From contig NW_003314319.1 of assembly GCF_000143415.4 (NCBI RefSeq), forward strand, positions 1,082,365 to 1,146,364: a stretch of 64,000 nucleotides of DNA. The letters are read 5' to 3'. Numbering within the stretch: the stretch's first letter is position 1; the number at the start of each line of letters is the position of its first letter. The stretch comes from Selaginella moellendorffii. Its lineage: Eukaryota > Plantae > Lycopodiophyta. The notes below the pieces were generated by a model. The model had not been told where the DNA came from, searched no databases, and saw only the letters and a list, made by a program, of their open reading frames with translations. Both the position numbers and the translations under genes were made by a program. Shown here one piece after another: positions 1 through 59,467 of this stretch.

Positions 1-110
1 GAAGAATCGCTTGGAACAGGTCCGGAAGTTTCGAATCAAAGAAATGGCAAGGGCGATGGAACAACGAGCGCTGGGGCGTGGGCGATCCGATCGCGCAGCT
101 CGCCGCCAAG

Positions 111-647
111 CCCGCTTGCAACTACAAGTAGTGTCTATCTGGAGCTGGAGGAGAGCTTGGCGAAGCACTTGGCTGGAGATCTCAGCGAAGAAACAGGCAT
201 CAACTTCGCGGACAGTCGTGTTTTCAGTCTCAGCCCTGCTCCAAGTCGGGTGTTCGCGTCCTCCTCAGGCTCTCTTTTGCTGGCACACACAGCGAGCTTG
301 ATCTCGGCATCACTTGGACAGCCCCGGTGGATTGGTCTCCGGCTCGGGCTCAGTTCTACACAAGCTGGTACTTGGCTGGCAGCGGGAATGCAAGGGGATC
401 CATCGTGATTTCGTTTCGGGCAAATGATGGTTCTTCCCGGGACTGTTACTCTCCAGGCATCGAGGCAGGCGAGGATGATACCGAGGTATGTTCGTTTGAA
501 TGGCCACACGCTACAGGTTTCGTTGGATTGCCGAAACGTGGAGTTTTGGGACTGATGAGATTCACACCAGCAGAAGATCGCAAAGCTCCTGCGGCTGTGG
601 AGATTGCTCAGCGAGTTTCTATTGCAACCCAGGCCATAACTCTTGAC
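111..647 (+). pseudogene. PIG-T: Frameshifted internal fragment of GPI transamidase subunit PIG-T/GPI16 in cassette A
   Basis: Translates PLATTSSVYLELE...SELDLGITWTAPVDWS...FYTSWYLAGSGNARGSIVISF...MRFTPAEDRKAPAAVEI. This is colinear with plant Gpi16 motifs as I recall them (C-x-LAKSSNVYL, DLGLTWK, SRFLMGSGNERGAIAI). A frameshift lies near 285 and both ends of the gene are missing. Confidence 0.88.
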
Positions 648-825
648 GATCCATTACCACGATGATCGATTCACAACCCAAGAGGGGGCTTTGCCAAGGA
701 CGAAACGCCGAGCAGCACGAATGCGGGGGATAATCTCGTCTGGTGGGCGATCTAACAAAAACGCCATGGATTTCGCAAAGACCCCTGTCATATGGTTCAA
801 GTACATGGTATGATTTTTTTATTAC

Positions 826-912
826 GGGAACCCGGTTGCCGAGATGATGGCTATCAGGTAAGTGTAGAGGTAAACCGTTGTAGAAGACCCGGGTTCGATG
901 CCGAAGGGTCCA
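826..912 (+). ncRNA. Degenerate tRNA-like unit (also 20754-20840-, 34702-34788+, 55169-55255-)
   Basis: A-box-like GGTTGCCGAGATG, B-box/T-arm GACCCGGGTTCGATGCCG, partly pairing ends GGAACCC/GGGTCCA, and TTTT at 925-928. No clean anticodon arm. Confidence 0.35.
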
Positions 913-984
913 CTCAACAAGGACTTTTATGCAAAAATTTTGCTAAATAAGGAGCCATTATTCTGGTTCGCCGGCTCACAAAAA

Positions 985-1053
985 CAGCTTAGACCAGTCA
1001 TTTAGGACATCGGTCTCCCAAAACAAACGTTTCGGGTTCGATTCTCTTCCCGA
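985..1053 (+). ncRNA. Second degenerate tRNA-like unit (also 20613-20681-, 34861-34929+, 55028-55096-)
   Basis: TAGACCAGTCATTTAGGACATCGGTCT(C/T)CCAAAAC...CGGGTTCGATTCTC has tRNA-like spacing of D-arm, anticodon loop and B-box, but the stems are broken. Confidence 0.33.
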
Positions 1054-55433: not shown

Positions 55434-55970
55434 GTCAAGAGTTATGGCCTGGGTTGCAATAGAAACTCGCAGAGCAATCTCCACAGCCACAGGAGCTTTG
55501 CGATCTTCTGCTGGTGTGAATCTCATCAGTCCCAAAACTCCACGTTTCGGCAATCCAACGAAACCTGTAGCGTGTGGCCATTCAAACGAACATACCTCGG
55601 TATCATCCTCGCCTGCCTCGATGCCTGGAGAGTAACAGTCCCAGGAAGAACCATCATTTGCCCGAAACGAAATCACGATGGATCCCCTTGCATTCCCGCT
55701 GCCAGCCAAGTACCAGCTTGTGTAGAACTGAGCCCGAGCCGGAGACCAATCCACCGGGGCTGTCCAAGTGATGCCGAGATCAAGCTCGCTGTGTGTGCCA
55801 GCAAAAGAGAGCCTGAGGAGGACGCGAACACCCGACTTGGAGCAGGGCTGAGACTGAAAACACGACTGTCCGCGAAGTTGATGCCTGTTTCTTCGCTGAG
55901 ATCTCCAGCCAAGTGCTTCGCCAAGCTCTCCTCCAGCTCCAGATAGACACTACTTGTAGTTGCAAGCGGG
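55434..55970 (-). pseudogene. PIG-T: PIG-T/GPI16 fragment, cassette A copy 4
   Basis: Near-identical to 111-647. Confidence 0.87.
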
Positions 55971-57965
55971 CTTGGCGGCGAGCTGCGCGATCGGATCGGC
56001 CACGCCCCAGCGCTCGTTGTTCCATCGCCCTTGCCATTTCTTTGATTCGAAACTTCCGGACCTGTTCCAAGCGATTCTTTCATCATCGTTTCGGGATTTG
56101 AGGACTTACGAGCTGGAAGATCGACAAAAGAAAGGGCAAAAGGAGGATAGGGTTCGATTTTACCTCTCAAAAGCCTCGACCACTGAGAAACGTACTTGGA
56201 GTAAGAGTTCGCACCCTTGGAGGCATGGAGGGCAATGAGATCACTCTTCTGAAGGCCATGGGTGTTTGCACTGTGCTGGGAGATTCTCTCCAAGGGCAAG
56301 TAAATCTGTGCTTGAATTCTTTCTAGTAGTTGAGTTTATATGTATGGAAAGTGTGGGCTCATTGAGATGCATTTGATTGAGCGGGATGAAACACGATGAT
56401 CACTGTCTATGTGTCGCATGAGTGTGGTAAGCAAGCAATCCACCTCTATGCATACTTGTGTCTGGAAGGGTTCTTATTAGTTGAGCAATAGTCTTGAAGT
56501 GCAATTATGTTTTAGTGGAGTTTTGAGCCTTGGACGATTGTCATTTAGCACATATACTTGGCATGGAAAGTTGCAATATACATTTCTGATAGAGCAAAAT
56601 GCAGGCCTAAGGTAAAAAAAGATCACCTTCTCATGGCTTTAGATGCTTGTTTTTCTCTTGAAGTTCTTTGAACTGATAATCACAGTTGGTTATGGGTTGG
56701 ATTTTTCTCTTTAAGTGGAAAATTTATGGAAAATGCAGGGATGCATACAATGTGTTTGACAACATGTGCTATAAAATAAAGGTGATCATTTGAATTGTCA
56801 TGGTTACTGGACATGCTCAATGTGAACATTATTTACAGCAAGGTGAAGGAAAATAAAGGAATGAATTGCATAGTCTATGCAAAAATTTCATAATGAATTG
56901 ATTCAAGTCTTTTAACCACAAAAGAGATCAGAACCTCTTGGTAAAATTGATAGTAGCCTGAAAAGATATTACTAAATAATAAGAAAATTTATTATAACTA
57001 GGAATGCCCTTAGTGAAGTTGGGAATTTTGCTTACCATTCTCATATATTTAAAGCCAAAGAGCCCATTAGCAAATAAGTTTTGAATTTTCTTACAATGCC
57101 CTAACACTAAATGCAATGTGATTTTAGCCCTCTTAACACACACATTTTTTCTGTTTTTGNNNNNNNNNNNNNNNNNNNNNNNNNNNNNNNNNNNNNNNNN
57201 NNNNNNNNNNNNNNNNNNNNNNNNNNNNNNNNNNNNNNNNNNNNNNNNNNNNNNNNNNNNNNNNNNNNNNNNNNNNNNNNNNNNNNNNNNNNNNNNNNNN
57301 NNNNNNNNNNNNNNNNNNNNNNNNNNNNNNNNNNNNNNNNNNNNNNNNNNNNNNNNNNNNNNNNNNNNNNNNNNNNNNNNNNNNNNNNNNNNNNNNNNNN
57401 NNNNNNNNNNNNNNNNNNNNNNNNNNNNNNNNNNNNNNNNNNNNNNNNNNNNNNNNNNNNNNNNNNNNNNNNNNNNNNNNNNNNNNNNNNNNNNNNNNNN
57501 NNNNNNNNNNNNNNNNNNNNNNNNNNNNNNNNNNNNNNNNNNNNNNNNNNNNNNNNNNNNNNNNNNNNNNNNNNNNNNNNNNNNNNNNNNNNNNNNNNNN
57601 NNNNNNNNNNNNNNNNNNNNNNNNNNNNNNNNNNNNNNNNNNNNNNNNNNNNNNNNNNNNNNNNNNNNNNNNNNNNNNNNNNNNNNNNNNNNNNNNNNNN
57701 NNNNNNNNNNNNNNNNNNNNNNNNNNNNNNNNNNNNNNNNNNNNNNNNNNNNNNNNNNNNNNNNNNNNNNNNNNNNNNNNNNNNNNNNNNNNNNNNNNNN
57801 NNNNNNNNNNNNNNNNNNNNNNNNNNNNNNNNNNNNNNNNNNNNNNNNNNNNNNNNNNNNNNNNNNNNNNNNNNNNNNNNNNNNNNNNNNNNNNNNNNNN
57901 NNNNNNNNNNNNNNNNNNNNNNNNNNNNNNNNNNNNNNNNNNNNNNNNNNNNNNNNNNNNNNNNN

Positions 57966-58179
57966 GCAGGGAAGCGTGGTGGATTGTAAGCAACCAAAGA
58001 GAACGACTCGAAAGACGATCCATAGGGGTTCAAATATAGAGGGAAAGGGCTCATGAACAAGAGTGCACCCCCTTTTCCAATCGGTCAAGGGTCTTGGGAT
58101 AGTTGGAGTTAAGCGTCCTTGGGTTTGAATAGTACTGGGCTGGATGACCTCCCGAGAAGTCCAAACTCAGGACCTTACA
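57966..58179 (+). mobile_element. Young TRIM family 2 LTR (5' part in gap) inserted in an older copy of the same LTR
   Basis: Closely matches 51680-51891 and ends TTACA. Absent at the equivalent sites near 23152 and 27318. Confidence 0.78.
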
Positions 58180-58837
58180 GAAGTATAGTAAATTATAAGT
58201 AATTAAAAAGAATGAATTGAGAGACAATCTATAGTTCAAATATAGAGGGAAATAACAAAAGTACACCCTTTTTTCCAATTAGTTTGGGTTAAAACGTGTT
58301 AGGTTTGAGTATTGGGATATTTGGGGGTTAAGTCTCCTTATGTTTGAGTAATACTGGGCTGGGTGGCCTCTCAAAAAATCTAAATTCAAGAAATGGTATA
58401 TTTCTCACTCATCTATATAGCATGATTTTAAATTTAGTTCTCTTAAATATATTGAGCATAACAATTTTAGATCTGATTCTCTTAAATACATTGACCATGA
58501 CACAATTGAGAAATGAAACTATGGTTATTTCCTCCTACTACATTAGCACAAAATTATTTTTCTTTTTATAAAGCTTTGTGATTTTTTTTCAATTTATCAA
58601 TACTCTAGATTTTAGATGTGATTCTGAGGAAAAGGAGAAAGCCATCCTTTGAGGGAGGACAAAAATTTGGCACTTCTTTATATTAAATATCTATAAATCC
58701 ATTTAGTAAATTCTTATGAAATATGATTGTCTAACAACCTTTTTATTTATAATTTCTAATATATGAGAGACATTGTAATTTGAATTTCTATAATAAATCC
58801 ACTAAAAACTATTAGTGAAATATAACTTTATATAAAT

Positions 58838-59467
58838 TCCTGAGTTTGGAGTTTTTAAGAGGTCACCCAACTCAGTATTATTTAAACCCATGGATATTTC
58901 ACTTTAAATATCCTAAGATATTGGGAAACGAGGTGCATTTTTATTCATAAGCCCTTTCCTCTTATATTTATACCCCATGGATCATCTTTGAAGTTGTTTT
59001 CTTTAGTTAGTTATAATTCATTACACTTCTTTGCAAATCACGCCCTTGTAAATGGAAGTTAAGAGCCATAGCTCTCTTGAGAGCCTAGCTCTTTTGACAC
59101 CTTATCTCTCGAGTTAAGCCCAACCAGAGGCAAACTAAACCTTCCAATGTCAATCGCAATATATGGCATGATTTTTTAACTAATCAATAATGTCAGATCC
59201 AAGAACTTTTGAATACCATGAACTCCTAAATTCGAACTTCCTAAGAGGTTATTTAACCTAGTACTATTTAAACCCATAGATGCTTAATCACAAATATCCC
59301 AAAACCTTTTATAACAAAAGGTCTTCTATTATTCTCTCTGTGTCAGTTGATATATGTTCAAGTTTATCTGAAAAAGGGATGCACTCTGATATATAAGCCT
59401 TTTCCCTTTATATTTAAACTCTATGAATTGGCTTTCAAGTTGTTTTCTTTAGTTGTTTACACTCTAC
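58838..59467 (-). mobile_element. Old degenerate TRIM family 2 (LTR-interior-LTR); partial duplicate at 25331-25680; other LTR relics at 23080-23370 and 27099-27390
   Basis: Colinear similarity to 3741-4155, including ctcttttgacacc and the PBS relic gaatacca. Confidence 0.62.

Follow-up and report, generated by a model that had tools for sequence, protein, structure and literature searches.

A Probable Nested Palindrome Built from Dead Transposons and a Repeat with a Pseudogene in Selaginella moellendorffii

A 64-kb stretch of Selaginella moellendorffii DNA (RefSeq assembly GCF_000143415.4, contig NW_003314319.1, positions 1,082,365 to 1,146,364 of the forward strand; hereafter the window) contains four copies of a repeat, cassette A, which self-comparison places in the order + - + -, with a 17-kb core (X) between the first two copies and an inverted copy of that core (X′) between the last two. 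Our analysis favors, at a probability of roughly 55%, the view that the locus is a nested palindrome made of transposon debris and a pseudogene-bearing repeat; on balance it appears that a stretch of at least ~23 kb, with inverted repeats at its own two ends, gave rise to an inverted copy adjoining itself. The repeats are probably held alike by gene conversion (copy-correction) between copies. On this view the type of event is an ordinary genome rearrangement, and the locus is probably neither a new mobile element nor a flip-flop genome.

Taken alone the locus carries little weight; it would provide a clean, base-level case of a palindrome nested in a palindrome, in a lycophyte. Two things can be read in it: the homogenised core of an old inverted repeat, with an edge that is sharp at an indel, and an order of events in which duplication came before a retrotransposon insertion. 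The locus is also a warning for users of the v1.0 two-haplotype assembly, in which the gene models SELMODRAFT_422868-422870 and an unnamed sibling are copies of one pseudogene-bearing repeat.

The window is nuclear, repeat-rich plant DNA of S. moellendorffii, with nothing of human appearance. It has few long open reading frames (ORFs), the longest of which encodes a Ty3/gypsy polyprotein with gag, protease, reverse transcriptase (RT), and RNase H (ORF list and Pfam). A tRNA scan found no tRNA genes in the window, no Rfam family (rRNA included) matched within it, and the longest cassette A ORF, used as a protein query, matched solely S. moellendorffii models. The locus is interstitial, with no telomere cap within the window.

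Two Long Inverted Arms around a Unique Spacer

The left arm (1-23370) aligns end to end, in inverted orientation, with the right arm (27099-56080) once a retrotransposon insertion in the latter is removed. Two alignments cover 2083-22183 versus 53549-33359: one pairs X with X′ (2083-16152 with 53549-39486, 98.8% identical), and the other pairs X and A2 with X′ and A3 (15851-22183 with 39691-33359, 99.2%). With the 5.1-kb insertion removed, the alignment continues into segments B and B′ (22181-23370, inverted at 28264-27099), and B′ abuts A3 just as B abuts A2; this pair had not been stressed in a preliminary description of the locus. The spacer between the arms (3,728 bp) is free of gaps and has no inverted partner, and no convincing microhomology was found at the arm/spacer boundaries.

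The preliminary description had read the window as a pair of [A> X <A] units whose cores run in opposite directions, and self-comparison confirms both this geometry (Table 1) and all of the direct repeats that were named with it. Its unit length of about 29 kb is recovered after the 5.1-kb retrotransposon is subtracted, and does not hold as the raw spacing, which is 33.9-35.0 kb.

The arms differ by 177 substitutions in 20.9 kb of aligned sequence (0.85% divergence, or 99.15% identity) and by a handful of indels. The substitutions look like real mutations of methylated repeat DNA, not sequencing errors, because they are mostly transitions (147 transitions to 30 transversions) and are evenly split between the arms. 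The level of divergence varies along the arms (chi-square p = 7e-7): the intervals 8083-11083 and 19083-22083 are nearly identical between arms, and elsewhere the difference is 1.4-1.7%. This unevenness fits conversion tracts, as in large palindromes (PMC8981503; PMC7023750); some of the heterogeneity, and some of the drop in identity at the boundary of A that is described below, could also arise if the assembler mixed near-identical repeats into a consensus.

Table 1. Features of the window, in order of position
Feature	Position	Strand	Remarks
A1	1-2226	+	Cut by window start; PIG-T (Gpi16) pseudogene exons; gene model P0013
Core X, left arm	2227-19426	+	
Piece lacking a counterpart beside A2	2227-2934		708 bp, in X next to A1
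Decayed Ty3/gypsy in X	~3254-7894		gag 4157-4768; RT/RNase H 5490-6645; integrase 6840-7277
Older PIG-T fragment in X	7974-8801	-	ORF versus Gpi16, E = 5.5e-10
Repeats S and R in X	12820-14725		
96-bp tandem repeat in X	15848-16149		
Old A-like fragment in X	17889-18472		
A2	19427-22183	-	One of gene models SELMODRAFT_422868/422869 (identical protein P0012)
Segment B	22181-23370	+	Outer continuation of repeat past A2; empty target site AAAT at 22181-22184
Unique spacer C of palindrome	23371-27098		No gap
Contents of spacer C			Rest of E2 (23371-23610, 25324-25726); truncated S/R repeat pair; 409 bp of unique DNA
Segment B′	27099-28265	-	Inverted copy of B; target duplication ATTTT at its end (28261-28265)
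Ty3/gypsy insertion	28266-33356	-	Right arm only
ORFs of insertion	29726-32752; 28920-29576		1008-amino-acid gag-protease-RT-RNase H ORF; integrase ORF
Second copy of target duplication	33357-33361		
A3	33362-36115	+	
Core X′	36116-53549	-	Inverted copy of X
230-bp insertion	53550-53779		Specific to right arm; flanked by ~115-bp duplication of A inner end
A4	53780-56600	-	Spans gap 2; gene model SELMODRAFT_422870
B″ and Ca″	56601-59352	+	Outer repeat continuation past A4; spans gap 3; extra repeat piece 57968-58181

A Retrotransposon Inserted after the Duplication

The 5.1-kb insertion in the right arm is a Ty3/gypsy retrotransposon with TG..CA ends and a 5-bp target duplication, AAAAT, and it lies exactly at the B′|A3 junction. 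Its domains follow the order gag, protease, RT, RNase H, and integrase (Pfam), and it has sites resembling a primer-binding site (PBS) and a polypurine tract (PPT). The A2|B junction of the left arm reads GAGC-AAAT-GCAGG, and the junction of the right arm, on the other strand, reads GAGC-AAAAT-[TGTTAAG...ATAACA]-AAAAT-GCAGG. The insertion is later than the duplication, because the left arm keeps the empty site AAAT and the right arm has AAAAT-[TG...CA]-AAAAT. The insertion also links the first contig of the window (1-29591) to the second, because its flanks, once joined, restore the junction that the left arm still has intact. The earlier statement that the window holds no transposase or recombinase was wrong: one largely intact and one decayed (and duplicated) Ty3/gypsy integrase are present.

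Two matching long terminal repeats (LTRs) were not found in the insertion; the 249-bp repeat at its 3′ end (28266-28514) shares only its first ~13 bases with the unit at the 5′ end. At the 5′ end (32964-33356), two 104-bp repeats that differ by one base flank the PBS-like site (33240-33251) and the PPT-like run. The insertion looks like a chimera of an autonomous gypsy element and one resembling a terminal-repeat retrotransposon in miniature, inserted as one unit, and the lack of homology between the repeats at its two ends means that it is not datable by LTR divergence. A perfect 137-bp tandem duplication (32619-32892) stands at the start of its gag region.

A Probably Renewed Core in an Old Inverted Repeat

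Cassette A, together with B and the adjoining segment Ca, makes up a repeat of ~4.6 kb (E), whose copies are numbered here as the A copies that they contain. Over at least 2.2 kb the A cores are 99.6-100% identical among copies: those of A2, A3, and A4 are identical to each other, and A1 is set apart by six substitutions of its own and by a 12-bp deletion. Homology between E1 and E2 extends past the boundary of A, beyond the 708-bp piece found only beside A1, at an identity of 87% (E1 2935-3103 versus E2 19421-19237); the fall from 99.6-100% to 87% occurs exactly where the 708-bp indel breaks the homology. Between E2 and E4, identity runs outward from 100% in A through ~98-99% in inner B and 94-97% in Ca1 to 85-95% in Ca2. 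The most homogenised part is also the most GC-rich (51% versus ~35%). A1 and A2 are an old inverted repeat with a probably renewed core, and the near-identical middle 3 kb, with its sharp edge at the indel, fits gene conversion, to judge from the sequence pattern.

The locus may have been built in five steps. Long ago, E would have come to flank X on both sides in inverted orientation. Conversion between these inverted copies would then have homogenised the central ~3 kb (A and inner B) to the pattern described above. Next, the whole [E X E] block would have been duplicated in inverted orientation, probably via fold-back or template-switch repair, to leave the observed geometry of arms of at least 23.4 kb around a 3.7-kb unique spacer; on this account X and X′ are opposite because the second copy is inverted, and no flip of X is needed. 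The Ty3/gypsy element then inserted at the B′/A3 junction of the right arm, with the arms also gaining small differences, and patchy conversion may be ongoing between the arms and among the four A copies.

Evidence against the Palindrome and the Question of Assembly

Several observations weigh against an inverted duplication of this kind. Over their outer 400 bp, B and B′ are only 93-95% identical, far below the remainder of the arms; a fast mutation rate in this AT-rich stretch, which bears tandem repeats, would explain the difference, as would a palindrome of greater age than a divergence of 1% suggests. The core of A4 equals those of A2 and A3, whereas the palindrome model expects an A1-like A4 and therefore requires recent conversion. 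The outer end of the left arm lies beyond the window start. The arm divergence of 0.85% falls within the allelic range of this two-haplotype assembly. There is a gap at either end of contig 2 (29692-53870), whose sequence comprises the retrotransposon's gag-RT half, A3, the whole of X′, and a 91-bp stub of A4. The annotated A-type proteins include no allelic counterpart of the locus.

The last three of these observations would also favor an assembly artefact, in which X and X′ are two haplotypes of one locus placed in one scaffold and the identity of the A copies is partly a consensus effect; the proposed cause is an assembler unable to thread reads uniquely through 2.7-kb, near-identical A repeats. 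The v1.0 assembly contains both haplotypes (PMC3095285; PMC3680112), and the difference between the arms is close to that between allele cDNAs, which differ by 7-9 bases (PMC3095285). In addition to contig 2, which holds X′ between gaps 1 and 2, contig 3 (most of A4 and the start of B″) is gap-bounded and only 2.9 kb long, and mismatches are concentrated at contig ends. We nevertheless regard an artefact as unlikely. The gap-free contig 1-29591 takes in B, the spacer, and B′ together with the end of the insertion that holds the integrase; because the run from B through the spacer to B′ is unbroken, the inverted E copy beside E2 is real, short of a chimeric join in that contig at a non-repeated point. 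The target duplication and its flanks rebuild the A|B junction across contigs 1 and 2, a zinc finger is split cleanly by gap 1, the sizes of the gaps match expectation, and the window holds three distinct versions of B.

Each of the three gaps is collinear with the copies that have no gap, and all are roughly as long as the paralogous copies predict. Gap 1 (29592-29691) falls inside a single Ty3/gypsy integrase, within the insertion: the 29692 side carries the HH half of the zinc finger and the motif KKTYELIKRNFYW, and the 29591 side carries CQRVK...GLLQPLPIP, with ~13 residues (~40 nt) missing; a frameshift immediately precedes the gap. The sequence on the two sides of gap 2 (53871-54299) corresponds to A positions 2109 and 1752, which leaves ~356 nt of A missing versus 429 N in the assembly. 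Gap 3 (57160-57965) has B position 22731 on one side and, on the other, the extra repeat piece at 57968-58181 followed by B position 23152.

Inverted versus Tandem Duplication

The preliminary description had proposed a different route to the same geometry, namely, a tandem duplication of a ~29-kb unit ([E X E] plus flank), in one copy of which X was later inverted by crossing-over between the A repeats. The two models are alike inside the units because each unit is bounded by inverted repeats, and only the outer flanks can discriminate between them. In favor of a tandem origin, A2-B-Ca and A4-B″-Ca″ are direct repeats with a common end (25726/59352). The matching intervals are 19455-19545 and 53780-53870, 19902-22731 and 54317-57159 (98.2% identical), 23152-23610 and 58180-58627 (93.9%), and 25324-25726 and 58939-59352 (92.5%); B″-Ca″ as a whole repeats 22184-23610 plus 25324-25726 at 92-98% identity. 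The near-identity of the A copies over at least 2.2 kb is ample for homologous exchange, which makes the exchange part of the proposal mechanistically plausible.

The outer flanks favor an inverted copy instead. Over ~560 aligned bases of inner B, the copy beside A3 (B′) matches the one beside A2 (B) without a difference, as an inverted copy predicts. B″ (next to A4) differs from B by 1-2.5% in inner B, together with a 15-bp indel, and by 3-15% farther out, and there are three larger indels between them; E4 lacks a 1.7-kb piece of E2 and carries an extra piece of at least 0.2 kb that E2 lacks. Outside A, the direct repeat is 92-98% identical with three larger indels, whereas X and X′ are ~99% identical with few. 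The 1.4 kb that follows E2 (25727-27098) has no direct copy after the end of E4 at 59352, where only an inverted R repeat at 85% identity is found.

Site patterns among the four A copies (four of the form abba and one abab) are too few to choose a model. The single abab site (A position 1017) pairs A1 with A3, and A2 with A4, as a tandem duplication would have it; all four abba sites lie at the inner end of A, which would travel with X under either model. Because the outer flanks favor an inverted copy and the tandem model needs one more event, a flip that the geometry does not call for, a single inverted duplication of [E X E] is preferred, at somewhat better than even odds, and tandem duplication followed by inversion of X is judged distinctly improbable. 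Under the single inverted duplication, the direct repeat of A2-B-Ca and A4-B″-Ca″ would reflect an older difference between E1-type and E2-type copies.

Exchange between A copies could still invert X in either arm. A more far-reaching proposal is that the four A repeats form an active exchange system in which X and X′ invert recurrently, giving several orientation isomers among haplotypes or individuals, and transcription across the inverted PIG-T pseudogene copies yields hairpin RNA directed against the parent PIG-T gene; the layout of the repeats would permit recurrent inversion, but the inverted duplication suffices to account for the opposite orientation of X and X′. We consider such a system very unlikely.

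Mobile-Element and Other Origins

The preliminary description had also suggested that [E X E] might be a giant, foldback-like mobile element with long terminal inverted repeats (TIRs), present as two insertions. Three observations are in its favor: E2 and E4 have a common sharp outer end next to different flanks, a 43-bp motif is found in inverted orientation at both ends of E2 (19151 and 25726), and other scaffolds also carry cassette A, one of them probably on both strands. However, no target duplication of 2-9 bp surrounds E2 (19151-25726), unit 2 is cut short on its left at 27099, and the repeats have no tandem sub-repeats. The flank of E4 is homologous to the flank of a third copy of the motif at 5007-5075 in X, and 59352 is therefore not a clean element end. 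X encodes no transposase except a retrotransposon integrase and holds only a dead gypsy element and a PIG-T fragment, and the two units lie head to head 3.7 kb apart, which fits a local duplication better than two transpositions. Neither the ends nor target duplications within the window support a giant long-TIR element, and two insertions of one are scarcely probable.

The 43-bp motif (core GAGAGAATAATAGGAGACC) is found at the ends of the E repeats (19151-19193, 25684-25726, 36349-36391, and 59310-59352), with weaker copies inside X (5007-5055) and at 50577-50625; no match to it is expected by chance. It may be the end of a MITE or of an old transposon.

Other kinds of mobile element were rejected as candidates. 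The motif bounds E2 as the ends of a TIR transposon might, but there is no target duplication and the third motif copy shares the E4 flank homology. E is not a Helitron, since it terminates in CTTG at the 3′ end, where CTRR would be required, and one copy lacks the T that should come next; nor is cassette A or E an LTR, since it has neither TG..CA ends nor a PBS after it, and its copies stand in inverted orientation. A plastid or viral origin is dismissed on the empty Rfam and tRNA scans and on protein matches to nuclear S. moellendorffii models.

Comparison with Known Systems

Mammalian X and Y palindromes (PMC8981503) and willow sex-chromosome palindromes (PMC7023750) are kept alike through arm-to-arm gene conversion. 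The S. moellendorffii locus resembles them in its two long inverted arms, ~99% identical, around a unique spacer; in patchy identity, such as conversion would leave; in having its most homogenised part the most GC-rich; and in the smaller inverted repeat pair nested within each arm. The human Y palindrome P1 likewise holds smaller palindromes inside its arms. Unlike sex-chromosome palindromes, the arms here consist of dead transposons and a pseudogene instead of expressed multi-copy genes, there is no known sex-chromosome or non-recombining context, and identity is somewhat lower (99.15% by substitutions); conversion is here suggested by a single assembly, and not by species comparison.

Non-allelic homologous recombination between inverted low-copy repeats produces inversions at human Xq28 (FLNA-EMD) and at F8 (int22h). 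The layout of the present locus is similar, with inverted repeats of 2.2-3.3 kb and >99% identity flanking a 17-kb segment, and would permit recurrent inversion; it differs in that the opposite orientations of X and X′ are explained by inverted duplication alone.

The likening of the locus to plastid or herpesvirus isomers stands as an analogy only. In principle a unique segment between inverted repeats can take two orientations, but those are multi-copy genomes with coexisting isomers, whereas this is a nuclear segment: its proteins are nuclear, it has no rRNA, tRNA, organelle, or viral genes, and its domains are those of a retrotransposon and PIG-T. Foldback transposons such as Drosophila FB are long-TIR elements with cargo, and here too long inverted repeats surround unrelated DNA; unlike FB, [E X E] shows no target duplication, sub-repeat structure in its repeats, defined common ends, or transposase.

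Nature and Distribution of Cassette A

The ORFs of cassette A are of low complexity and overlap on both strands. Annotated gene models on A contain pieces of the glycosylphosphatidylinositol (GPI)-transamidase component PIG-T (Pfam Gpi16), with ~600 bp of PIG-T-derived exons in intron-like spacing. Exact look-ups matched four S. moellendorffii A-type models to the 1,263,218-bp scaffold of the window, and A-type models are also found on four other scaffolds. One of these (507 kb) carries eight PIG-T-related models, seven A-type and one X-type, which, judged from accession order, are probably on both strands; a 523-kb scaffold carries three A-type models, and scaffolds of 54 kb and 9.4 kb carry one each. 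Cassette A is thus a pseudogene-bearing repeat of low copy number that is not private to this locus and is probably not a transposon end. Tandem Repeats Finder detected no array in it.

For some cassette-A loci on other scaffolds, for example, LOC9635798 (proteins P0001, P0014, P0017, and P0018), RefSeq gives several isoforms, so the repeat may be transcribed; no RefSeq model for the A copies of the window turned up.

Content of X and Small Repeats

X is a 17-kb stretch of a dead retrotransposon and other debris. A search of X for cargo or recombinase genes beyond those of gypsy was negative: a Pfam scan of 27 ORFs returned only gypsy and Gpi16 domains, and no other Pfam domain was found in ORFs of at least 65 amino acids. 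The 96-bp tandem repeat in X, whose unit has an internal palindrome, is present in 3.1 copies in the left arm and 4.2 in the right (39394-39793); the arms differ in length at few places, of which this is one. The 230-bp insertion specific to the right arm begins with a short, hairpin-forming sequence.

Two truncated S/R copies in the spacer (23608-24915 and 25744-26689) face each other in inverted orientation; the pair is a smaller, older inverted duplication at the center of the large one. The S repeats in the arms contain arrays of a 12-bp satellite (TCCATCTCGGAC and variants; 13779-13880 and 41750-41851), further arrays of which lie in the right flank at 59675-60250, 61374-61651, and 62136-62374.

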